Assembly: GCA_964019335.1 (NCBI GenBank)
Contig: OZ025726.1
Span: 248,001 to 312,000, forward strand
Length of the DNA: 64,000 nt
Origin: Diplonema japonicum
Taxonomy: Eukaryota; Protista; Euglenozoa: Diplonemea
Reading direction: 5' to 3'
The notes beneath the pieces are model-generated. The model was not told the DNA's origin. It did not search any database and saw nothing but the letters and a program-made list of their open reading frames with translations. Made by a program: the position numbers and the translations under genes. Numbering within the stretch: position 1 is the stretch's first letter; every line of letters starts with the position of its first letter. Positions 44,404 to 62,988 of this stretch are shown here, piece after piece.

Positions 44404-44991
44404 TTAGTCCAGCACATCTTCGTTCACGATATTCACATGGGACAAAGGGTTATCCTTTCTCATTGAGCCGAGGGGGCACAGAGGATCATGGGTATCCACA
44501 GTGTACCCAGGCACAAGGTTAGAAACAGGTGGTGTCGGGAACTCGGCAACCGGAGGGGGCGCAGGGAATGGATCAGATGAGTTACGCAGATCTCTCGTCT
44601 TTTCCTGTTGTCGCTGCTCGAGCGTAGGCGGCACGTACTCTGCAGGTTCTTCAACAGGGGGAGCAGGATGGGGTGGGTGCGGGTTACCCCTGTGCACCAC
44701 AGCACTTTGCTCAGGTGCCATTCCAGCCGCTTTGCCTAGATGAACACTCTCCTGCGGCAATAACGGCTCTTCATGCTCTTCCTCGAAACTGGGCGGTGAT
44801 TCCTAAGAATGATTTTTTTTTTTTTTTTTTTTTTTTTCAAATTACCTTCGAGTACATAAAAAACGCCACAGGAATGAACAAAAACGAAATCCCAAGCAAC
44901 ACCCACCCGTACGCCTGCAGCCCAGGCGGGTAGTCCTCATAAGAGCGAGTCAAGTCCGTTATGAACAGGAAGAGGAACATCCCCTGTGAAA

Positions 44992-45038
<47 letters not shown>

Positions 45039-46506
45039 ATACAAAGCAGATCGGCCCGACTGTGTAGTACAGCGTGTAGTACCAGTACTGGGACAGCTCT
45101 CTGCCTCGCCCGTTGAACTGCGGGTCGTCGATGGTTGCCCTTTTGATGGACTGCACCACACGGTCCCAACCCCAATCGACACGGAGGATGATCGCCTCGA
45201 AGAAGCAAGCTATGATAAGGCAGTACGAGGCAACATAATGATCCACAATGTCAAGCAGGGGGAACCCAACCCTGGTACAGTAAGGCAGCCCGAAAAGGAA
45301 GAAAAACAAGCAAACCCCACCGACGATAACCCACTTCTTTTGAGGACGGCCGATGTGAATGAGGTAGTCGTCAGCGTACGTAATTACAGTCTCTGCCCAT
45401 GCGAAGGTACTGTCGAGCCCCAACGTCAGCAACATAATAAAAAAAAGTGTTGCGAAAAAGTTAGACGTTACTCCAAAGAGACCAACACCCTCAGCAAGGA
45501 CGACAAAGGCAAGCCCAGCACCACCGGAATCAGCAAGCTCTTCAACAGATTGACACACCAACCCCGGTGTGTTGCACGATTTTTTCGACATATACCCCAA
45601 TATACTGAACACAGCGAACCCGCCGACAACGCTGAAACACGAGTTGCAGCACGCGACAAACATGTTTGTTGCGTAGACATCTTCAGTTCGCTTCGTGCAG
45701 GATGAGATTGTGATGGCTGTTCCCATACCCGGCGACAGGGAGAATAGAATCTGCCCGCAAGCGGTGGCCCACATTTCCAAATCGCCCAGCTTGTCTGATT
45801 TGAACTTACCGATGTAGAATTCAACCCCATCGTTCGCTCCGTCCAGCGTCACAGATCTGAACAGAAGAACAAGCATCAGAATAATAGGCAGTCCTACCGT
45901 AACGTACGACACCTTCGCTGACGCGGTGATCCCTTTGCACAATGCACCGAACACGATTAACCATACCAGGCCTAGACTAAACACAAGATGCCATTGCAAT
46001 GCACCCGGTCCGTCAATTTCACCTCGTGTGAGTTCGCCCGGGTCGTACCTTACTAGTACCTCGTTCCACCAGAAGTTCTCTGATGCGGAAGTTTTAGCGG
46101 GCAACATGTTGGGAGCCTTGCTGTCAACCGTCCACGGGAGAGGGTCGCTGAAAGAGTGGAACAGATACACCAGCGAGTACGCCAGCAACATGTTGTAATA
46201 AGACAGGACCATGATAAGCATGAAAGCCGTCATCCATCCAACACCCACCCACCTGGGGTGCATCACCTTCATGCAATCCATGGTGCTTTTTCTTGTGTAG
46301 TTTCCCCAGCTCAGTTCCAAAAAGTACATGGGGCACGCTACCAGGATTAAGCTCACAGCGTACGCGACTAAGAAAGCGCCGCCGCCGAACTTCCCCACCA
46401 GGTACGGGAACCTCCATACGTTTCCGATACCGATGGCGTAGCCCATCAGGAGAAACCTGTAATCCATAGTGGATATCTCGGCATGCTCTGTTGGTTTATT
46501 ATCCAT
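44404..46506 (-). CDS. Neurotransmitter:sodium symporter (SLC6/NSS) family transporter (~666 aa). Exons 46506-45043, 44983-44846, 44802-44404
   Basis: GYAIGIGNVWRFPYLVGKFGGGAFL, GQILFSLSPGMG, GAGLAFV, LGLDSTF. GT-AG introns 44984-45042 and 44803-44845. Confidence 0.95.
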
Positions 46507-48154: not shown

Positions 48155-50380
48155 TCAAACCTTGACACCGCAGATCTCCCTTATGCCGATGATGTCGTTG
48201 TCGTCGATGTAGAGCATCACCGCGTGCTTCGTGCGGAGCGCAGACACAGGGAGGTCCAGCCCGGATGCTGTCTTAAGCAGGGCGATGCATCCTCCAGGGG
48301 TTAGCGCCTTCCATTCGGGTTTGGACTGGCTGGTGATCGCCTCAACGGGCATGGATTTATCTGTTTTTGTGAGGATTTGCACGGTGTCGGCCGTTGCAGA
48401 CAACGACAGAACCCTGGAGGCAACGTAAGGGTGGATGAGGGGAACGGCCTCTTGCGCGATTCTGCAGGTTAGGTTAGGCTCGCCTGCACTCTTCGTTGCA
48501 TCTTGAGAATCGATACGACGGTCGCGGACAAGAAAGCGAAGCCCACAGTTCACAATACGAAGCTGCTTCTTCGAAGCGAGCCCGTGGCGAATGGTCTCAG
48601 AGACACCCTTTGAACAGAACAGAATTTGGTTGGGAACCCCTTCATGGGGCTGAACAAGCTCACCCGTGCTCTTCTGCTCCAAATGGTACCTGCATATTAA
48701 TTGATGAACTGGGAAATCCTTGTCAAGAGTGAAGAACTCGCGGAGGCGTGACACAACTGCTGGAAGGGCGTCTATCAGTGAGATGTAACGGGCGATTTCA
48801 CGCTGGAGGGTCCCGTTGTTGCATGTTCTTGTTAGTTTTGCGGCCGCCTTTGCTTTTTCAATGTCGTTGGGAGCTGTTTCTACAGCTGCTTGGAGTTTTT
48901 TCAACTGTGCTTCACGTTCTAAGCTTTCTCTGTCTTCCTCTGTTTCACTGTCGTATGCGAGGACTTCGTCGTCCGGGCATATTTTGTCCGTTTTGCCGAT
49001 CTCCGCTACCTTTTCAAACACCGCCACGAAGAACCCACCAAAGTCCCCCATGTGAGGGAACAACCGGAGGCATTTTGTCATTTCCTCCTTCAAACCCTCG
49101 TCTTCTGGTGGGAAGTGGTACTCCCTCACCATTTTCGACCCCGCTTCCTTTGCCTCGGAGTGCGTTTTGAACATCGTGTATTTCTTAGGGCACATCACCT
49201 TCCATGTTTTCATCCCCGGTGCGGAGTTGATATTTGTCAGCTTTCTCGCGTCGGCCAGTCGAAGCCCACCGTTCGTCTTCCGCAGAATGTGACACACAGC
49301 AGCTTCATTCTCAATTGGCGACAGACTGCACGTGCTGTACACGAATTTCCCGCCGATTTGAAGCAATTTTGCAGCTCGGAGCGCAACTAAAACCTGGTCC
49401 TTGTGGAGCTGGATGGAATTCTTCGGATGCCACTCACGCCACATATGTGGCGCCTTTCGAAAGGTACCGTCCCCGCTGCACATGACGTCGGCAAGGATTC
49501 TGGTGAAAGGGATACGGCTCGACGGATGCGAACCCTCGTCGCTGTTCATAACGGAAGGGTAGTACCTGCTGTCGTGCGAGGTGAACAAGGCCAAAGGATA
49601 TAATGTGGAGAGCCGCTTAATCTGATGGACGAGGATGTTGACCCTGTCCGTTGACATGTCGTTCGCGACGACAAGACCCTCGTCTGCTGAGTAGTCAATA
49701 CGGCCTGTGAACACAGACTGGACGGACTCTTGCAAAGATGAACTGCCTTTTCCATTTTGCGCCAGGTTCGCAACAGCTAGCGACGAGAGCATTTGTGCGG
49801 TTTTTGAACCCGGTGCCGCGCACATATCCAAACACCTTGAACCAGATGTAATGTCAAGCAGATGAACAGGTACCATGCTGGCCTCTTCTTGTCTATTGAT
49901 AACACCGCGTTCAGTGTGGAGGATAAGAAATTTATGGAGGGGTGCGAAGGTGGGATCCTTGCGGAGTAGAACGCGGGGTGCATCGATGAACCATCCCATG
50001 TCGTTGGGGATCCATGGGATCGGTTTCACCACGATGCCTTTTTCCTGGTCTTCTTCCGCTTTTCTTCTGTAGCTGTGGAGGGTTTCCTTGACAAACCCTG
50101 CTTGGCTGTCTGTAGGGGTGATCCAAAAGGTGGTCGGTAAGGGTTTCGCCATCATTTCCACGAATTTTTCGTACTCTTCTTCTGTCATGTAACCTGATTC
50201 GACGAAGTTGGCTTTGTAGAAGGATGTGAAGGCCTTGTTCGGTCTCGCCTTGTCCCTTACATCCGTGCGCTTTCTTTCTGGACGTGGGGTCTCGTCCCCG
50301 TCACCCTCGCCCTCCCCCTTCACAGGGAGGTTCTTGTTCGCACTTCCGTCTGTTTTTTGCTTTTTGTTTCTTCGCGGCAT
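48155..50380 (-). CDS. NSUN2: tRNA (cytosine-C5) methyltransferase NSUN2/Trm4 (741 aa)
   Basis: INRQEEASMVP, LDMCAAPGSKTAQ, ILADVMCSGDGT, VYSTCSLSPIENEA, GGFFVAV. Confidence 0.95.
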   Translation of the reverse strand: MPRRNKKQKTDGSANKNLPVKGEGEGDGDETPRPERKRTDVRDKARPNKAFTSFYKANFVESGYMTEEEYEKFVEMMAKPLPTTFWITPTDSQAGFVKETLHSYRRKAEEDQEKGIVVKPIPWIPNDMGWFIDAPRVLLRKDPTFAPLHKFLILHTERGVINRQEEASMVPVHLLDITSGSRCLDMCAAPGSKTAQMLSSLAVANLAQNGKGSSSLQESVQSVFTGRIDYSADEGLVVANDMSTDRVNILVHQIKRLSTLYPLALFTSHDSRYYPSVMNSDEGSHPSSRIPFTRILADVMCSGDGTFRKAPHMWREWHPKNSIQLHKDQVLVALRAAKLLQIGGKFVYSTCSLSPIENEAAVCHILRKTNGGLRLADARKLTNINSAPGMKTWKVMCPKKYTMFKTHSEAKEAGSKMVREYHFPPEDEGLKEEMTKCLRLFPHMGDFGGFFVAVFEKVAEIGKTDKICPDDEVLAYDSETEEDRESLEREAQLKKLQAAVETAPNDIEKAKAAAKLTRTCNNGTLQREIARYISLIDALPAVVSRLREFFTLDKDFPVHQLICRYHLEQKSTGELVQPHEGVPNQILFCSKGVSETIRHGLASKKQLRIVNCGLRFLVRDRRIDSQDATKSAGEPNLTCRIAQEAVPLIHPYVASRVLSLSATADTVQILTKTDKSMPVEAITSQSKPEWKALTPGGCIALLKTASGLDLPVSALRTKHAVMLYIDDNDIIGIREICGVKV

Positions 50381-52079: not shown

Positions 52080-52117
<38 letters not shown>

Positions 52118-52124
52118 ACTTCAC

Positions 52125-55100
52125 TTACGAGGCTTCGACAACCAGGGTGTCATCTGTAGTGTGTTTTTATAAAAAAAATTTTTTTTTTTTGTTTTCCCCC
52201 TCCTAGCATACCATCAGCCTCAGCCATCGGTTTTAACTCAACTTCGATTTCCTCTTCCCTACATGGAGGGGAAGGCGCGCTGTGTTCGTCTCCGTAATTA
52301 ATCTCACCAGCGTCTCTCTCGTTCATTCTAGCTTTTAACGCAGCCGATTCCTTCTGAACCACATGAAAGCCTTTGAAAGCCTCCCTATCAACCAAGGCAT
52401 AGGCCACCCCCCACACCTCCATCAGCGCAAAGAAAGGCTGCATTACAAGCTGAAGCCACAACAAAACCAAATACTTCATAGCCCCAAGCTTCCTAACGGA
52501 GAATGTGAATAAAAACCCGACAACATAAGCCCAGCACCAATAAGCTGACACAAGAGCAAGCACAACCCTGAACCCCATGGAGGTGTCTGTCTTGACCATC
52601 AACACAAGCAATGCCGCAGGGAGCATCAAAGGAGCCCAACCCCACTGAATTTCAAGAAGGAAAAGCCCTACTCGGTACTTCAAAGGAATCAAAGGCGCTT
52701 TTGCGACAAGCCACAACCCGGCAAACCATCTCTTCCTCTGCTTTGCGAAATCGAGAATTGAAAACGGAGACTGTTCGTACATAAAAGCGTCAATGTATGA
52801 GAAGGTGACACCTAACGAACGTGCGACGAGAGCGAAATAAGCATCTTCTGTAACAGAGCCTGCCATGCCGTGGTCGAATGTTGTGTCTTTTTCAACTTTT
52901 TGCGATGCGACAACGAATGACCCGTGCATCCCGATGAGCGGCTCGTGCAGTTCGAACTGGATTCTGAATTTTCCGAAATCGTCCGCCACACGGATGCTGT
53001 CGGCCAGCGTCGTGACCCAGTTCTCTATCTCGTCGTTGACGCCGTACAGAATGATGCCCTGCCCGATCCTCCCGTACTTTCTGATTTTGTCGTCCACCGC
53101 CTTCTGCTCCATGGCGCAGTGGTAGTACACGTGTTGAACTGTTTCGACATCGAACCGGGTCTCCTCGTCTTGGTGAACAATCCAGTCATCAGGGGTGCAG
53201 CTGCTGTTGTGGATCGCGTACTCCAACGCGCGTGCTTTGAACTTCGCGCCTGACGGACATTTGTACTCGTGCGGCACGATGATCTCTGTGACGGGTGTTG
53301 TCGTGCGTGACTGCAGTTGCATGTCGTTGTCGGTTACTACTTCCAACTGTGTGTGTTTTTGAAAAATATAATTTTGAAATATTGAATAATACCTCGTATT
53401 TTTCAGCGGGCAGACATGCTTCCAGTACCCTTGCTGCCGTCTCTACATTCTCCAGTACGAGCAATGGGTGTTTTCCGCGTGTTACGATTCTGAAGTGGAG
53501 CTTGTGTGAGAAGCTCGGGACGCTTCCGCTTCCGTCGGAGCCGAGCATGGCCTCAAGCGATGGGATTTTCTTGCGTTTGCATGGCGGGAACAGAACCTGC
53601 CCCGCAAGGCCGATGACAGCTACAGGAGTCGATGTTAAGGCCATCCACTTGATGACGGTAATGACGGTGCCGAGGGTCTCCCCCTCCATGCTGAACACGT
53701 ACGAATCGCCCTCCCATCTTAGAATGGTCGAGGTGCCGAAGACAGCCAGTGCAGTGAACATGACGAAGATGGACGCCATGGCACAGTAGTAGCCGATGAT
53801 CTTGACGAACTCAGGCGCGGCGGGGGTCTTCTCTATGAAGTTCGGGATCAACGGGTACACGGCCCTCCATGACTTCAGCAAGTACACGCGAGCAGGCTCC
53901 TCGAAGAACTCGTACACTACAAAGGCAGCTGCGAGCAGCATGAACAGGAACGCATCGCACGCCCAGTTCTGCAACGGGTAAGGAACGTTCAGGTACCTTT
54001 GGAACGTGTTGTGCAGAGGAGCCTGCAGCAGGTACAGCGTGAAGGAGTACTTCCCAAGGAACACGAAAGGTCCCCAGCTCAATGCACGGGACATGAAATC
54101 GTGCCCCCGTCCACCATACCACAACAGCACTCCGAACAACGGCTGGAACATCCCAAACCTCGCCCACTCATGCCAGAACGGTGTTTTCCCATGCTCGTCA
54201 CTGAGGTCCAAGGTGCAGAAAACCGCCACAATCACCAACAAAGCACCCGGCACGGCAACTACATCCCTCATGGTGGGCGATGCATTGGCGCCTTCCTTGT
54301 GACTTTCCAAAAAGTTCAACCCAAGCACCAGACCAGACATGAAGGAGGGAAGGTGTGCCGACAAGAAAACATGGTTGAGTGGCGCGAACACGCCCGTCCA
54401 GTTCTCATTGAGTGCATCCAGCGCAGCCATTGCGGACAAGACGTAAAGGAGCGGAAGCAACACATTAGACCTCTTCTGCACGGAGACGGTAAGCACAATA
54501 TCCCGCAGCGAAGGGTACATGGAGTAGAGCAGGAGGAAGGGGCCGACAGCCCACCCCGGTGTGTTGATGTAATTGACAGCAGGCCCCGTCCACTTCTGCA
54601 CAGCAGCGAAGATGAAGAAGGTATCAGTGGCGTTGAAGGCATCGCTCGGCATAACCAGCACACCCAGAAGGCAGGTCGCCACGTACAACGGGTACAGTCT
54701 CACTGCCCTCTTGAACCAGAAGTCTGTCTGATCGATGGTCCTGTCGCCGTACTGGTATGAAAGCACAAACCCGGACAACATGAAGAAGAAGGTGAGCTGC
54801 GTGGCACCCCAGCTGGCGAAGATGTCCCACACATGGTTGCGCGACCCGTGGAAATGGTACAGCACGATGTGCACAGCAGCAAAGAAACGCAGCGAATCCA
54901 AGGGAAGCATCGTGGACTTGCTGTTCTGGCTGAGTGAGGGTTTCGGTTTGGCAGGCGTCCGGTTAGCGTTGCCCAGCACCCACACGAAGTACAGTTCTGT
55001 CGCGGCGGTCAGCACACCAGCTGCGATCATTGTCCAGAACCAGACACCCGAAGTAGCATTGCTGCCCTCCTGCACATCGAGGTCGAACCAGCACATCTCG

Positions 55101-58100
55101 CCGGTGGAGTTGGCAATCCTGATGCGCGCCTTTGCGAACAACAAAGCGATTGCAGCAAGGAAAACAGGCCTTGAGAGAGTGAACACCTGACGCTTCGTGA
55201 TCAGGCTCGTGCTGGACGCCCAGTAGCAGATGGCCAGCAAGCCCAACCTCACTGCGTGGTAGACCCAAGCGTCGGTGACCAGCCTTCCCATCTCGCGGAT
55301 GTCTGCTCTGAAAGAGCCGAACTTCCCCGACACAGAGCCCCCCTCAGTCAACAGCACAGCGTGGATTATGATGTCAATCACGACTATCAACTTGAGGACA
55401 AGGGCGGTCCTGCCGGAGTTGTCCTCACGCACTTCCTGCACCTCGTTCCCCAAGTTGGTGTAGTTCGTCTCCAACACGTCCTCGCCGTTCATGGACGCCT
55501 GCATGGTGTACAGGGTGCTTTCCTTCCCTTCGCGGGACTTCGTCGTCTTGTAGCACGCACCCATCAGCGCGATGGCCGCAAGACCACCCCACAGAACGAT
55601 GGCGTACCCTGTTTGGCTCTCCGAGTCGCTTTGCTTGGCGTACTCCTCTGTGCTCTTCGTGCACTGCTCGTCGTCGACGACTATGGTGAGGACAGCGTAG
55701 CTTGACATCGTGATGGTTTGCTTGCCCAGCACCACCTCGGGCACCTTGTCCCCGTTGTTCAAAGAGGTAACCTGGATAACCTTGGCACCGCTCCTGGAGG
55801 GCACGATGTTGAGCTCTACCTCAGTTGCGCTGTCCTTGATGTTAGCCACACCGATGACCATCCTGCAGTCATCAGTGATGCCGCCTACGATGACGTCTTC
55901 TGTCCTGCCAGGAACGTTCGATGGCCACGGCCTCGCTATGGCTTTGGCAACACCAGCAGGCCAGTATGAGAGGAACGTCTCAAGGACCTTGTACATCTCA
56001 GAAGGGTTGCCTGCACGGTCGTAAAGTCCAAGACAGCCTTCGCTCCACGTGATATCCTTTGCCATCCAGTACAGAGCGTCGGTGACACCGTTGTTGATCA
56101 TGAGCAGCAGATTGGCATAGGCACGCGCAGCCCATAGAGGCGATGTGGCTATGTTGTTCTCCTTCTTTGTGTTGTTCGAAGATTTCTGTTCCACGTAGCA
56201 CTCTGCAGCAGTACTGTCGAAGTAGTGCCCGCCGAGGGGCATTGTGACAAGGTTCAACCCTGACCACTCGGTGATGACGAGGGGCTTCTGCGAACCGCCA
56301 CCTATCTTAACCTCGTGGTGCCAGTTGAGGAACGCCTCATCCAGATAAGAGGGACCCCTGCCCTTTTTGTTATAAACATCGTCCCAAGGATGCATGGAGA
56401 AGGCTTCGATCATGTTCATCGCTTCTGTGTCCTCAAGCAACGTCTGCATGTAACACTTGTCAAGGAAGGTGTTGGTGACGGGGTCCACGCACAGCACCGA
56501 CGATCCGAAGTCAGAAACACCGGGCCCAATGAACTTGAGGGTGACGCCTCGCTCGCGGAGGGCGAGCCCGGTGGCTTTCAGTAGTGTGACGTACTGCTGT
56601 GGCGACACATATGTGTCCCAGACGCCGTTGGGTTCGTTGGACAGCTCCAAGTAGTCGATGGTGATGCCAAGCTTGTTCTCCACAAACCACACGGACTCCG
56701 CCAGCAGTTCTGCCCAGTCCTGCAGCCTCTCGTCTTTCAACATGTGCGAAACAAACGAGTTGTTCCACGTGGAGTCGATGGTGTACGTGGTGGGCGCACC
56801 GAACATGGTCACCAACACCTTGGCACCCCTTTCTTGCAACATGTTGCCGTATTCCCTCATGTCGCACTCACGCCCTTTGTACAAGTCGGCGACAAAGGTC
56901 TTCAGCTTCTCCCTGCCATGGTCGGAATGCAGTTCAATAGGCGCCTCGCCTGTCGGTTTCAACAAAGCGTTGCCCCATCGCACCATGCGCAGGCCGTTGG
57001 CGCCAGGCATTTTGTCGTACACAGTGGTCTCGTCGGAGGCTGCCCAGGCGTTGAGCCCGAAGTAGAAGTCGTTGGTTGTGCTCTTCTGGTCGATGGCGAA
57101 GGAGTAAGGGACAGGGCGGCGGCACACAGACGCAGTGTAAGGGTAGGCAATGCTGGTTGCGTAGGGGTTATTGTTGAAGTACGAGACAGGCGTGGCACCT
57201 TCATACGACAGATAGCAGCCCTTAGGCGAGACGGTCGCTATGGCGGGCGGGGGCTTCTGTACGGCACTCGAAAACTTCAGCTGCGTCAACGCGTACTGGC
57301 ACTCCTCGTACGTCCCCACATCTATCATGTCAAGCTCCAAGCATGTCTGGTTAAGCTCTGTGCGTTGGTATCCAGGCTGTTCCTTGATCATGGCGCAGAG
57401 TGGGACGTCGAAGGCCCCTGGGTACCCTCCTTGCAGCGCGTTGAAGTAAAGCCCCTTTTGACGAGCCCCCACGGTGGTCTCCAACACGAAGCACCCGCCT
57501 GGACGGTAGAAAGCCTCGTCTTTGGAAACAAGCCATGCCTCGCTGTAACGGAAGCCGAGGGCGGTCGCTGCGGCAAGACAGTCCTCACTGGTGGCAATGT
57601 TTTTATAACCGGTGACAGACAGACAAGATGTGGCTGCCGTGCTTTGAAGGAAATCGGTGTCGAGCCTCGGTCTGCCGGTGTATTCACAAATAGGCGCAGA
57701 GTGGATGTGCATCGAGGTGGACGCCAAGTAGTTGTTGAAGAAGAGGCCTTCAGACCCTTGCCAGATATCATAATAACACCCAGGAGGTTTCGAAAAAACG
57801 TCAGATTCGGCAGTAGAACGGATCGAGGAGTTCATCCCGATCGTCATGGCCGCACGGACGCAGTCATCCGAAGTTTGTATCACACCGTTGCCCCACCCGA
57901 TGCACGACTGCTGTCCGCCGATTTTAATGTACCCGGTCCTGTCAGGGGTGGGTGCCGCATATGTCTCCTCAGAAGTCCTCGCACAGATAGGTGACGAACC
58001 GATGAACGAAGAACTCGAGAGGACAACGGTGTTGTAGTACAGGCCTCCTAAGATGAGGTCCAGGTAGCACCCTGCGGGGTACTCGTAGCTTGAGATGACA

Positions 58101-58552
58101 TTCAGAGGGGAGGTGATGTCAAGGTCGGTAGCTGCAGCCTGACAGGACTCTGCAGAAAGGACAGTGATCTCACCGTGGAAGATGCAGGTGCTTGATCCGT
58201 TCAAACGCAGGTGGGAATCCGTTTCCATTTTCCCGAGTGCCTTGCAGAGGGGTTGTGAGTAAGCAACCAAGGCGGGGCTCAGAACATAGCTATTGAATTT
58301 CAATAGATACGACCCGTCCAGTGTGTACTCCCAGAAGCAGCCTCCGATCGATATCTGACGCTGCTCTACAGGTACTTCCACCACAGACTGCAGAGAGGCC
58401 CCTGCGGCGAGTGCGCACTCGGACTTGTCCTGAATGAGCAAGTTGCCCCCCATGAAACATGAGGTCCCCATCCAGCCCTCTGTATACCCAGAGGTAGCTC
58501 CTTCTGTTATCGCTACGCTCACTACCGAGAGCAGCCATATTTTCCGGATCAT
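52125..58552 (-). CDS. ~2107-aa fusion: signal peptide, 5 Cys-rich repeats, clan GH-A glycoside hydrolase, TM segments, acyltransferase-3, egghead-like GT2 glycosyltransferase. Exons 58552-53393, 53346-52212, 52153-52125
   Basis: MIRKIWLLSVVSVAITEG; LELSNEPNG and LVITEWS; LDSLRFFAAVHIVLYH, FFFMLSGFVL, LGKYSFTLYLLQ; FRIVTRG, then across phase-0 intron 53347-53392 LEVVTD, KFKARALEYA, WIVHQDEET, HGSF, EDAYF, QRKRW. Last intron 52154-52211. Confidence 0.88.
57120..58490 (-). repeat. Five tandem ~85-90-aa protein repeats with 4 Cys each
   Basis: Pattern (G)Y...(S/T)C...I.+..EC..AA..L...P.GC(Y/F).....(Y/F)N......P(I/L)C, repeated five times. Confidence 0.85.
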
Positions 58553-58646
58553 GTTTTTGTATTTTTTTTTGTTTTGTTTTTTTTTTTTTTGTATGGGTTT
58601 TAACCTGTTAGAAGAGTAAGGGTGTAAACAGTAAAGAAAGAGAAAG

Positions 58647-58689
<43 letters not shown>

Positions 58690-58962
58690 GGGGGGGGGGG
58701 GTGCAAAGAGAGGAAGTGGGGGGGGAAAAAAGAAAAAAAACCAGAGAGAGAAAATATAAAAAAATATTGCCAAATCCCAGGTGTCGTACCCCCCACCCCA
58801 CCTCTTTTTTTTCAACCCCTCTCGAGGCAGTAGTAATAAAAAAAGCTTGGATGTTGTAGGAGGGAAGATGGAGAGCATTGACCTGGTTTATATTTTGCCT
58901 GCATGCTGTGGTGGCAAGAGCGGAGGAGAGAGAACTAAAAAGGTGCGGCCATAGCATACAGC

Positions 58963-58995
<33 letters not shown>

Positions 58996-59306
58996 CCACT
59001 CTCTTTTTGCTCTCTTTTTTTTCCCCCCGTAGGAAAGGGTTTTTTTTTTTTAATATGAAGAAAGAAGAAGTTTGCAAACTTGCGAAATCATCACAAAAAT
59101 ATAATGTTTTTTATTTTTTTTATTTTTTTTTTGTTTTCCTTTTTTTTTTGAATCCTTTTTGAAGTTTCTCTTTCTTGTCTATTTGTTTATTTTTATTTTA
59201 TTTTTCTTCAGAATTCTTTCTTCTTTCTTTCCATAATTTCGAAACAAATGACAAAAAAAAAGGGGGCTTTAATTGCAACACTAAAGTGGCGTTAAGCGTG
59301 CAACGA

Positions 59307-59809: not shown

Positions 59810-60802
59810 CTATTTTCCAAATTTCTCCTTAGCGCTCATGATAGCAGCTTTTGGATCATTCTTGGCCTCAGCAATTGCGGCGGCGGCGTTTTCACTAACG
59901 GCAGCACCTTTCAGCATGACATCATGCATCAACGCAGCAGGAGGAGCGGAGGGAACAATCGGAAGTGTGTCATAAGGGTAATCAGGCAGAGGAATGGTAG
60001 GATTCACCTCACGCCACGCCCAGTCAAGAAGCCCGAACGCTTTAAGAGCAAGGTTCGATGACGCAGTTCCAACAGAAGGCCTGAAATCGAAAAGACGATG
60101 GAAGTGACCCTGCCTGGTGTAGATCAAAATTCCTTGCGTCACGACCCTGGGAGTTGGAAGAGGCATGCAATGGGGGCTGATATCAACTGTGTCCAGCTTG
60201 ACACCTCTTCTGATACAGACCACGTCCCTGAGGTCAACACGGAAGGTTGGGTCATGACCGGACCCAACTCCTATGAAGATAAAGCTCTTATTAGTGACCG
60301 CCATGTACCCTTCGATGGTCTTGTGCTGTTGCTTATCCTTGTCGACTTGGTTAATTAGCGTACAGTAATAGTCGTGGTACACGAGGCGTTCGTTGTTTTG
60401 CAAGGTGGGGAAGTGTTTTTTGAACCTTTCTTCTGCGTCTTTATCCATCTTCTCCTGGACTTTTTCGTGTGCGGATTGTGTGGCTTCTGTTTTCATTTTG
60501 TCGACTTTGTGCGATACGGAGTCGAGCTTTGCCTGTGCCTTGTCCATGAAGCTTTTCTTCTCTTTTTTCGCGAGTTCTACTTTTTTCTCCTTGTACTCCC
60601 CGCTGCGCTCCTCCAGGCCTTTTTCCCGGGTTTTTTTCTCGAGGCTTCGTCTCTCGGCTGGGGGTGCTACATCTGATTTGTCCTCGGGCATCGGGGCCCG
60701 CATCACCAGAATCGTCTTGTATTTCCCTTGAATGAGAACCTCTGTCGGTGCAATTGTTTCAACAACCGCCGTCATGCTCGCCATGGGGTCATCGAATCCC
60801 AT
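59810..60802 (-). CDS. GRAM (PH-like) domain protein (330 aa)
   Basis: EERFKKHFP...ERLVYHDYYCTL...IEGYMAVTNKSFIFIG...VDLRDVVCI, preceded by a charged coiled coil. Confidence 0.85.
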   Translation of the reverse strand: MGFDDPMASMTAVVETIAPTEVLIQGKYKTILVMRAPMPEDKSDVAPPAERRSLEKKTREKGLEERSGEYKEKKVELAKKEKKSFMDKAQAKLDSVSHKVDKMKTEATQSAHEKVQEKMDKDAEERFKKHFPTLQNNERLVYHDYYCTLINQVDKDKQQHKTIEGYMAVTNKSFIFIGVGSGHDPTFRVDLRDVVCIRRGVKLDTVDISPHCMPLPTPRVVTQGILIYTRQGHFHRLFDFRPSVGTASSNLALKAFGLLDWAWREVNPTIPLPDYPYDTLPIVPSAPPAALMHDVMLKGAAVSENAAAAIAEAKNDPKAAIMSAKEKFGK

Positions 60803-61621: not shown

Positions 61622-62988
61622 TTAATTTGTTACATTTATTTGCGTCATCGACCCAAGCTTGCTGGCCCTCGGTGAGGTGCTACCCATCGAAGGCCTTGAT
61701 GGTGCGACCAAGCTTTCTTCCGTGTCGCCTGGGGGGGTTATTTTGTATTTTTTTGTGAAAAAGGAGGCCCTCAATTCTTCTTTTTTTTCCTATTCCTTTT
61801 TTTTTTTTTTTTTTTAGAAGACAAATCTAATCAAAAAAAGTAAGTAGAGAAAACAAGCCAGAGCAATTATGACACCCTTTCTTTGCAAAACACACAAACC
61901 TTTGTTCTTAGGGGCAACCGTCTTCTGGCTTGCCTGAGCCTTATCGCTGATGTCGGCAAGGACGCCAGCACAAGCAATGGCGACACCAAACCAACCCTGT
62001 TTTTTTTTTTTTTTTTTTTTTTTTTTTTCTTTCTTCCATACGATGGGGCTCAACGAGTTGCCTTTGAACAAAATAGAGTAAATCACGCTGAAAATCTTAC
62101 GTGTAGTGGTGACAGTGGCGTTGACAAGAGGGTCAAAGGTCGAGATGGTGAAGAAGATAAAAGACTGCCCCAAGGCGGAACAGATCGAGAACTGGATTTT
62201 TTTTTTTTTTTTTTTTTTTTTATGTAATTCACTTCCCTCTTTACCTTGATGATCAACCACATGATGCGGGAGTCTTTGTTGCAGAATTCAATGGCGGCAG
62301 AAATCTCGGAGTTCATGAAGGCAGCCACGATGGCAACCAGCAACATGTAGAGGTTGGTCCAAAACATAAAATCGTAAGCCTTAAGCTTAATGTTCTTCTC
62401 GGCCGTCTTTGCCTTCAACCTCTTTTGCACACCACCAGTTAAGCCATCGCACGCCAAGGATCCTGCAAGCATGAACATACCCAAGTACGTGGACTCGGGT
62501 GTGTCCTTCTTGCCACTCCCGAGCGAGACCACAGAAGTTCCAATGACAATTGCTGCAACCTGAGCATAGTCTCGGAGGGTGTATGTGGCTCCCCCTAAGA
62601 GCAGCGAGCCTATCATCACTGGGATCATTTTGGCCGATTTTGCCAGTGTCGCGACGGGGAATGAGACACCGTACTTGAGAGCAGAGTTTGTGCACCATTT
62701 ACTGAGCACTTGGGTGAAACCAGTTACTGAGAAAAGCTCGTGGGGTATGCCCCTTGTGAAGCCTGTGATTGCCAGCATTGTAAAGCTCACTAAAACGTTC
62801 GCAGCGGCCTCTAATATCTGCAAGAACCACACGTAAGTAAACTTCCCCCCGTCGGCATCCTTGAACCTAAACACGTCCTCCTGCAAGCTCCCATAGTACA
62901 TGTAACAAGCATAGATACCCCCCGCTCCCCACAACAGTTGCGGGATCGTCCCTTTCTTCTCCACTCCCTTCTCGGGTTTTTCAGACAT
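61622..62988 (-). CDS. SLC35B1: SLC35B1/HUT1-like (UAA family) transporter (~365 aa). Exons 62988-62245, 62191-62042, 61996-61900 and tentatively 61728-61622
   Basis: GIYACYMYYGSLQE, ALKYGVSFPVATLAKSAKMIPVMI, SLACDGLTGGVQ, ALGQSFIF, TTTRKIFS. Introns 62192-62244 and 61997-62041. The last exon needs a longer GTT...CAG intron (61729-61899) and is tentative; read-through to 61814 is the alternative. Confidence 0.88.

Follow-up and report, generated by a model that had tools for sequence, protein, structure and literature searches.

Egghead of Drosophila and BRE-3 of C. elegans are family 2 glycosyltransferases (GT2) that act as β-1,4-mannosyltransferases on glucosylceramide, and Egghead is a stand-alone protein of ∼450–500 amino acids. 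The fungal α-1,3-glucan synthase Ags1 combines a GH13 glycoside hydrolase (GH) ectodomain, a GT5 domain and a multi-pass transmembrane (TM) part in one polypeptide. Here we describe a gene of Diplonema japonicum in a window of 64,000 nucleotides (contig OZ025726.1, positions 248,001 to 312,000; positions below are those of the window). The gene lies on the minus strand (58552..52125) and has three exons and two short GT-AG introns. Its spliced product, a predicted multi-pass membrane protein of 2107 residues, carries five tandem Cys repeats, a GH30-like ectodomain, an acyltransferase-3 (AT3) domain and an egghead-like GT2 module. The three enzyme families are well known. In the literature searched, which included a P. 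papillatum proteomics paper (main text and supplements) and the D. papillatum genome paper (main text), no description was found of a conserved eukaryotic polypeptide that combines them, nor any mention of the protein itself. Ags1 is the nearest architectural precedent, in that a multi-pass membrane part connects an extracellular GH-type domain with a synthase inside the cell. However, its domains are GH13 and GT5 rather than GH30-like and GT2 and it has no acyltransferase, so that the likeness is one of analogy and not of homology.

The gene model rests on a minus-strand open frame of 1962 codons without a stop (59077..53189). Its likely start Met at 58552 opens a signal-peptide-like sequence (MIRKIWLLSVVSVAITEGA), and a signal peptide is predicted at residues 1–22 (MIRKIWLLSVVSVAITEGATSG; 58487..58552) from the charged start and hydrophobic core. 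From this Met, coding exon 1 (53393..58552) runs for 1720 codons and ends in AEKYE. It is followed by intron 1 (53347..53392; 46 nt, GT..AG), by coding exon 2 (52212..53346), which encodes the catalytic domain of GT2 and the TM segments at the C-terminus, by intron 2 (52154..52211; 58 nt, GT..AG), which splits a codon, and by coding exon 3 (52125..52153), which ends in DDTLVVEAS with a TAA stop at 52127-52125. A Trinity transcript of D. japonicum (P0121; EukProt EP01064) contains a complete open reading frame (ORF) of 2107 amino acids that is 100% identical to the spliced product. Its residues 1–1720 equal exon 1, 378 residues correspond to exon 2, intron 1 is crossed as AEKYE/LEVVTDN and intron 2 as EAD/DDTLVVEAS at the end, the second splice being required by the C-terminus of this protein. 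Diplonemid mRNAs are trans-spliced, and a polypyrimidine tract read from the sequence ∼50 nt before the ATG (58604..58740, minus strand; poly-C and (CT)n, ending in ctaacAG) is probably the spliced-leader acceptor and the start of the 5′ untranslated region.

Contigs from four public runs, belonging to three studies, were compared with the window over 52205-58099. Those of runs X3, X5 and X6 are collinear with the genome with zero differences. Run X7 gave one RNA-derived contig of 6366 nt that covers all domains and omits precisely 53347-53392, which is intron 1. This contig runs from 52212 to past 58099 and then ∼491 nt further toward the start codon (to ∼58590); its match breaks off exactly at 52212, and the 33 letters that remain fit exon 3 plus 4 nt. 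The locus is a single genuine Diplonema japonicum gene that is transcribed, and not an assembly chimera. The preliminary description of this DNA had proposed one spliced frame with the same two end coordinates and had argued that the fusion does not depend on a speculative splice. Both points hold, the latter since the FRIVTRG motif of the GT2 module (53494-53474) lies inside exon 1. Coding sequence at the locus is ∼55% GC, and the spacers are AT-rich and homopolymer-rich. Long homopolymer or dinucleotide tracts occur on both flanks, at 58610-58740 (poly-C and (CT)n) and at 52080-52120 (∼40 T past the stop), and the public-run contigs seem to end near them.

Residues 480–965 (55658..57115) form a region whose assignment was obtained through profiles and predicted folds, direct phmmer searches with either exon having found no sequence match in the PDB. 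An exhaustive phmmer search retrieved 154 relatives at E up to 1e-3 (best outside the diplonemids, 8e-23), of which ∼150 are uncharacterized ‘hypothetical’ proteins from protist transcriptomes and from bacteria such as a Planctomycetaceae metagenome-assembled genome (MAG). A profile of 40 of these distant relatives (alignment A2) matched the GH30 xylanases 4fmv (1.6e-21) and 5cxp (1e-18), PslG (5e-8) and GH39 xylosidases (1e-4) in the PDB. The AF2 model (pLDDT 85.8, pTM 0.90) has the strands and helices of a (β/α)8 barrel, with N- and C-terminal strands together making a side β-sandwich. Foldseek placed it with GH30 4fmv (1e-21) and PslG (4e-18), and VIA gave Z 31.0 to Xyn30D (4qaw; 379 residues aligned, rmsd 3.5, model residues 3–486 spanned), ∼30–31 to XynC/Xyn30A, ∼27 to human glucocerebrosidase (GBA) over ∼382 residues and 24.9 to a GH39 xylosidase. 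Pfam models touch few of the 40 relatives: Glyco_hydr_30_2 one (E 0.0023), Cellulase three (best E 0.00045) and Glyco_hydro_cc one (E 4e-06); NCBIfam yielded nothing useful.

The candidate acid/base is E640 in an NEP motif (56635-56633), which aligns to the NEP Glu of 4fmv, and the candidate nucleophile is E762 in TEW (56269-56267), whose strand was placed by spacing and the DSSP string (model strand 279–284). All orthologues (alignment A1) retain E640, H721 and E762; across the 40 distant relatives E640 and H721 do not vary, and T-E762 is present in at least 90%. A further motif, HPWDDVY, lies at 56392-56372. Judged from the model, the ectodomain is a clan GH-A domain of GH30-like fold that has no match to a curated GH30 sequence model. 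It resembles XynC, Xyn30D and glucocerebrosidase in the barrel, in the sandwich contributed by both termini and in the NEP acid/base and TE nucleophile ∼120 residues apart, and it resembles PslG, a GH39-like hydrolase of Psl exopolysaccharide biosynthesis, in being membrane-tethered beside a synthase. In contrast to these enzymes it matches neither Pfam GH30 nor Pfam GH39 and is only 11–18% identical to solved members.

A first TM anchor follows the ectodomain (residues 982–1000; 55553..55609, by hydropathy), and after it comes a region conserved among diplonemids (residues 1045–1194; 54971..55420), with ∼4 hydrophobic segments, that contains LTEGG..GKFG, MGRLVTDAWVYHA, CWFDLDV and WFW and has no Pfam match. 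The AT3 domain occupies residues 1218–1545 (53918..54901) and matches Pfam PF01757 with E 1.2e-18 and 67.7 bits against a cut-off of 31, over model positions 4–321 of 326. The motifs R-X10-H in TM helix 1, described as ‘absolutely conserved’, and RXXR at the cytoplasmic face in TM helix 3 are essential in AT3 proteins (PMC9833829). Both are present here, as R1222-X10-H1233 (within 54901-54851) and R1282-xx-R1285 (within 54712-54689), together with the block FFFMLSGF (54790-54767), and their residues are invariant in all rows of alignment A1 that cover them. Among 244 AT3 relatives the stand-alone ones are mostly OafA/YrhL-type proteins of ∼380 amino acids, at 25–40% identity. The majority of relatives, for this domain as for the GH domain, are metagenome proteins without a label. 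The domain shares with OafA, OafB and OatA a score far over the cut-off, R-X10-H, RXXR and the FFxxSG block, and would be expected to share the mechanism in which an acyl group from acyl-CoA crosses the membrane via a pore of 10 TM helices and is transferred to a sugar acceptor on the outer side. It differs in lacking an SGNH partner domain, in having enzymes fused on both sides and in being eukaryotic. A Kyte–Doolittle scan of residues 1213–1550 found 8 clear TM segments, with two more possible by eye. Topology was derived from hydropathy combined with the published AT3 arrangement of ten TM helices with both ends cytoplasmic (PMC9833829). The counts would fit an ectodomain outside, an AT3 domain with both termini inside, and two later TM segments that return the GT2 domain to the cytosol.

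The GT2 module extends from about residue 1580 to the C-terminus. Its first part is encoded in exon 1 (53393..53815) as two TM segments (∼1593–1611 and 1637–1655, by hydropathy) followed by HFRIVTRGKHP, collinear with stand-alone egghead-like proteins and with P0276 and P0279, and 3–4 hydrophobic segments follow the catalytic domain. Exon 2 encodes KFKARAL (53244-53224), HQDEE (53175-53161), TED (52851-52843), QRKRW (52740-52726) and FHVVQK (52368-52351). The module matches Pfam PF13632 (Glyco_trans_2_3) with E 8.1e-23 and 81.7 bits against a cut-off of 27. Key residues of KFKARAL, HQDEE, ADSIRVADD, TED, QRKRW and FHVVQK are invariant or nearly so across 41 sequences (alignment A4). Of 236 relatives, the closest outside the diplonemids are 51–54% identical and were recorded in uncultured samples and in the green alga Cymbomonas. 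Many of the 236 are labelled ‘egghead protein’ or ‘beta-1,4-mannosyltransferase’ by their source annotation. The module resembles Egghead and BRE-3 in the Glyco_trans_2_3 domain, in two N-terminal and several C-terminal TM helices and in the motifs KFKARAL, (H)xDEE, TED and Q(R)xRW; unlike Egghead, it forms the last quarter of a 2107-residue protein, behind AT3 and a GH ectodomain. When profile A4 was compared with the PDB, the only solved relatives were BcsA cellulose synthases (E 3e-8; BcsA residues 326–497). The alignment with BcsA (PDB 4hg6/5ej1) covers TED, QxxRW and TM helices and places FyvVqKe, the profile's version of FHVVQK, opposite FAVTAKD, which contains the gating-loop motif of BcsA (FxVTxK/FAVTAK). 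The alignment is confined to the C-terminal half, and in contrast to BcsA the diplonemid GT2 has no PilZ domain and fewer TM helices.

Bacterial members of the GT2 family, from Anaerolineae and others, are ∼44% identical, and several are fused to GGDEF. Seven egghead-like GT2 proteins of ∼650–675 amino acids with GGDEF (PF00990) were noted (P0029, P0038, P0055, P0059, P0060, P0066 and P0073), and such fusions hint at c-di-GMP-linked control of the bacterial enzymes. A quick maximum-likelihood tree of the GT2 domain comprised 18 proteins, eukaryotic or unlabelled, and 29 bacterial ORFs chosen from a range of phyla, other matches being left out. The four diplonemid modules form one clade (100, starred value) within the starred set of eukaryotic and unlabelled proteins (95, starred value), together with Cymbomonas, Guillardia and Pterocystis; the sister of this set, with an SH-aLRT of 80, is an animal (Biomphalaria) group, followed by Chloroflexota. 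The egghead name is taken from source annotations of the relatives, and the animal group in the tree is that of Biomphalaria. The preliminary description had read, from the letters, a GH-A barrel with both catalytic Glu, an acyltransferase-3 at ∼54905-53895 and an egghead-type GT2, and each identification was supported: by the GH30 fold at Z ∼31 with E640 and E762 invariant in the orthologues, by the Acyl_transf_3 match with its essential motifs intact, and by the GT2 motifs in exon 2 together with the eukaryotic clade, its animal sister group and the naming of the relatives.

The whole architecture is conserved among diplonemids. A length-matched protein search returned five proteins, P0121 among them. 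The D. ambulator orthologue (2100 amino acids, 64% identity) has the full architecture, that of Flectonema neradi is represented by isoforms of 2013 and 2183 amino acids (45% identity), and a further orthologue of 2140 amino acids (43% identity) is encoded on an 837-kb ENA contig. Every orthologue found has the Pfam domains of both AT3 and GT2, and all parts are collinear in alignment A1. For D. papillatum there are partial models at 50% identity, KAJ9436180.1 (P0125; 1432 amino acids) and KAJ9436492.1 (P0127; 1756 amino acids). Since the latter stops exactly at KYE, the conserved exon 1 boundary, and KAJ9445474.1 (P0001; 351 amino acids, 85% identity) carries the GT2 part onward, the D. papillatum gene seems to be split across partial models rather than to be of different build. 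The split models, and a product name shortened to ‘Beta-1’, hide the full architecture in the published annotation. In D. japonicum the gene is single-copy, as is the ectodomain, in a search of the 132-contig, 62.5-Mb assembly.

Part of the fusion is found outside the diplonemids. P0276 (916 amino acids, on a short Logan contig) is collinear with residues 1201–2073 (35% identity, E 1e-158), and P0279 (976 amino acids, also on a Logan contig) has the same AT3-like plus GT2 layout, more weakly. These two are the closest non-diplonemid relatives. The AT3 match of P0276 is sub-threshold, and pairwise alignment shows the loss of the R-X10-H His, of the FFxxSG block and of RXXR; the AT3-like part may be degenerate and non-catalytic. 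The centrohelid Pterocystis (P0077) has the reverse order, GT2 and then an intact AT3. From these arrangements, AT3 and egghead-like GT2 have come together on at least two occasions in eukaryotes, and this speaks for a functional link between them. The repeats plus the GH ectodomain, seen in diplonemids only, look like a diplonemid addition to an older AT3-GT2 core.

A survey of 80 bacterial loci with an egghead-like GT2, with flanks of up to 10 kb, found an AT3 gene near the GT2 gene in 2 and a GH30-like gene in 1. In both AT3-positive loci (L061:223-2582 and L060:3530-7705) the AT3 gene comes after the GT2 gene; one is from a Hyphomicrobiales MAG, with genes overlapping or adjacent, and the other from a Marmoricola MAG, with AT3 ∼1 kb downstream. 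Descent of the diplonemid gene from a bacterial GT2-AT3-GH operon was considered and rejected in view of these counts and of the position of the diplonemids among eukaryotes in the GT2 tree. In the same tree, the nesting of the GT2 domain among eukaryotes gives no support to its recent horizontal transfer. The term ‘operon-in-a-protein’, introduced by the preliminary description, is thus apt as an analogy with bacterial exopolysaccharide systems and fails as an account of origin, the protein not being a fused ancestral operon.

We consider it probable that the GT2 module builds a β-linked glycan, that the AT3 domain acylates it at the outer face of the membrane and that the tethered GH30-like domain trims or releases it. 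The GT-A domain of GT2, predicted to be cytosolic and with DEE, TED and QRKRW motifs, would take a cytosolic nucleotide sugar, and the module, with a BcsA-like FxVVxK loop and flanked by 2 and by 3–4 TM helices, would make the β-linked glycan on or through the membrane. AT3 would then move an acyl group, probably acetyl, from cytosolic acyl-CoA via its pore to the outer face, where the glycan would receive it. Kept in place by the TM anchor, the GH30-fold ectodomain would cut, trim or release the product, and the five Cys repeats ahead of it may bind glycan or substrate. By analogy, the arrangement resembles bacterial exopolysaccharide systems of separate proteins, comprising a GT2 synthase, an O-acetylase and a hydrolase of the PslG or BcsZ type. 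The data establish the gene, its transcript, the conservation, the folds and the motifs, while topology, a glycan shared by the three activities, the product (such as the O-acylated β-mannan or glycolipid coat of the preliminary description) and its role are hypothetical. A more specific version is offered tentatively: that one polypeptide polymerizes, exports, acylates and cuts an O-acylated surface or secreted glycan, such as the mucilage that surrounds sessile cells, and so constitutes a eukaryotic one-protein equivalent of a bacterial exopolysaccharide system, with a GH30-like ectodomain added to an older AT3-GT2 core.

Several considerations weigh against this proposal. Animal Egghead is reported to be a non-processive mannosyltransferase acting on glucosylceramide, and therefore a polymeric product is not implied by the likeness to it. 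The GH piece has no Pfam GH match at E up to 0.1, and the specificity of such an enzyme is not readable from its fold. The TM counts come from crude hydropathy only. The rarity of AT3 and GH30-like genes in the bacterial survey means that the three-way partnership is without independent genomic precedent. Starved, sessile cells of D. japonicum have a mucilaginous coat that swimming cells later leave, and a glycocalyx is present (PMC5845003). This biology favours the proposal, with coat or glycocalyx as a plausible product, but the link to mucilage is conjecture and names a candidate rather than supplying evidence. Lastly, contigs do not show transcript ends, and shorter mRNAs produced by internal trans-splicing could coexist with the full-length one. 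A rival explanation is that the fusion is an artefact of chimeric assembly, polycistron read-through or internal trans-splicing, with the domains separate in the cell; the trans-splicing of diplonemid mRNAs and the limits of contigs at transcript ends would fit it. We regard this as very improbable, given the 1720 stop-free codons, the exon that FRIVTRG shares with AT3 and GH, the complete transcript ORFs on record in three species, and the identity of contigs from the four runs, including a spliced RNA contig that covers every part. An internal polypyrimidine-AG signal like that preceding the ATG was not seen, no systematic search for such signals having been made.

Two other explanations accept the fusion and assign it a different task. 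The GT2 module might add one β-linked sugar to a glucosylceramide-like lipid, AT3 acylate the head group in the outer leaflet and the GH30 ectodomain turn the glycolipid over. The placement of GT2 in a eukaryotic clade with an animal sister group, the ‘egghead’ and ‘beta-1,4-mannosyltransferase’ labels of its relatives and the match of the GH model to human glucocerebrosidase, a member of the same fold family, all fit such a role. However, the model is nearer to GH30 endoxylanases and also like the polysaccharide hydrolase PslG, the GT2 module retains a BcsA-like TM region and FxVVxK loop, bacterial members are often fused to GGDEF, as is typical of regulated exopolysaccharide synthesis, and no diplonemid sphingolipid data were found in the literature searched; overall, we think a glycolipid substrate rather unlikely. 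Another explanation is that the Cys repeats and GH30-like domain bind and cut environmental or prey polysaccharide in feeding or sensing, with AT3-GT2 serving an unrelated task and the fusion merely co-localizing the two. In its favour, other organisms have an AT3-like plus GT2 core but no ectodomain, so that the ectodomain looks like a later addition, and digestive capacity at the diplonemid cell membrane has been reported (PMC12697944). Yet at least four species have kept the fusion at full length, at 43–64% identity, the genome has a single copy of the ectodomain, and a digestive enzyme would be oddly designed if permanently tethered to a synthase; together these points make this explanation improbable. 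The joint synthesis, acylation and trimming of a β-linked glycan is the reading that we adopt.

The N-terminal region between the signal peptide and the GH domain (residues 23–478; 57118..58486, minus strand) consists of five tandem Cys repeats of ∼80–90 amino acids, defined by alignment A3 and a repeat hidden Markov model: R1 (58486-58240), R2 (58216-57976), R3 (57940-57682), R4 (57658-57388) and R5 (57373-57118). Each unit has four invariant Cys together with G-C, G and N, in the pattern C..C..GC..G..N..C. The repeat model finds 5 copies in each full-length orthologue and 0 in the remaining fetched proteins. A Pfam search with a limit as loose as E 10 matched nothing in the repeats, and their neighbours in the protein Atlas are unnamed. 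An AF2 model of the region, from a six-row alignment (pLDDT 80.6), shows small α+β units, and searches with all five domains as one model brought no significant hit in Foldseek (best E 0.15) or in VIA (best Z 3.2). Neither sequence models nor this five-domain fold indicate PAN/apple or another known Cys-rich module, though a single-repeat fold might still match one; leech anti-platelet protein, which has a PAN fold, reaches a VIA Z of only 2.1. That the repeats bind glycan or substrate is a guess.

Against the rest of the genome the repeat profile gave three weak matches only. One (E 7e-5; locus L008, G000:C45:32562-32729, minus strand) lies inside a stop-free open frame of 17,230 amino acids that is perhaps a giant gene. 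Another (E 6e-5) is a single weak repeat in a 1699-residue ORF (G000:C78, L011:1699-6795, plus strand) with sub-threshold Pfam matches to Glyco_transf_8 and Chitin_bind_1. This ORF may encode another large glycan-related protein that shares the Cys-repeat module, and it gave no clue to the identity of the repeats.

The same-strand neighbours of the gene are functionally unrelated to it, with one exception. Downstream on the minus strand are an SNF-family (sodium:neurotransmitter symporter) transporter (44962-46506; PF00209, E 2e-105) and an NSUN2-like RNA cytosine methyltransferase (48158-50380; PF01189 and Pre-PUA_NSUN2). Upstream on the same strand are a 330-residue ORF with no Pfam match (59813-60802) and, ∼3.5 kb away and two genes before the fusion gene, the exception, a UAA transporter family member of the nucleotide-sugar type (62086-62988, minus strand; PF08449, E 4e-30), whose proximity could be either chance or that of a functional neighbour.

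Diplonemids are among the most abundant heterotrophic eukaryotes in the ocean. Paradiplonema papillatum is transformable and has an orthologue of the gene, and it therefore offers a testable system. If the modules do share one glycan, the protein would be a compact natural model for how synthesis, transmembrane acyl transfer and hydrolytic trimming are coupled in space, a question that in bacteria requires multi-protein complexes. Since no target is known for any eukaryotic AT3 protein (reviewed in PMC9558356), that glycan would also become the first candidate in this role. The gene would likewise open a way into the chemistry of diplonemid mucilage, with possible relevance to marine particle formation.

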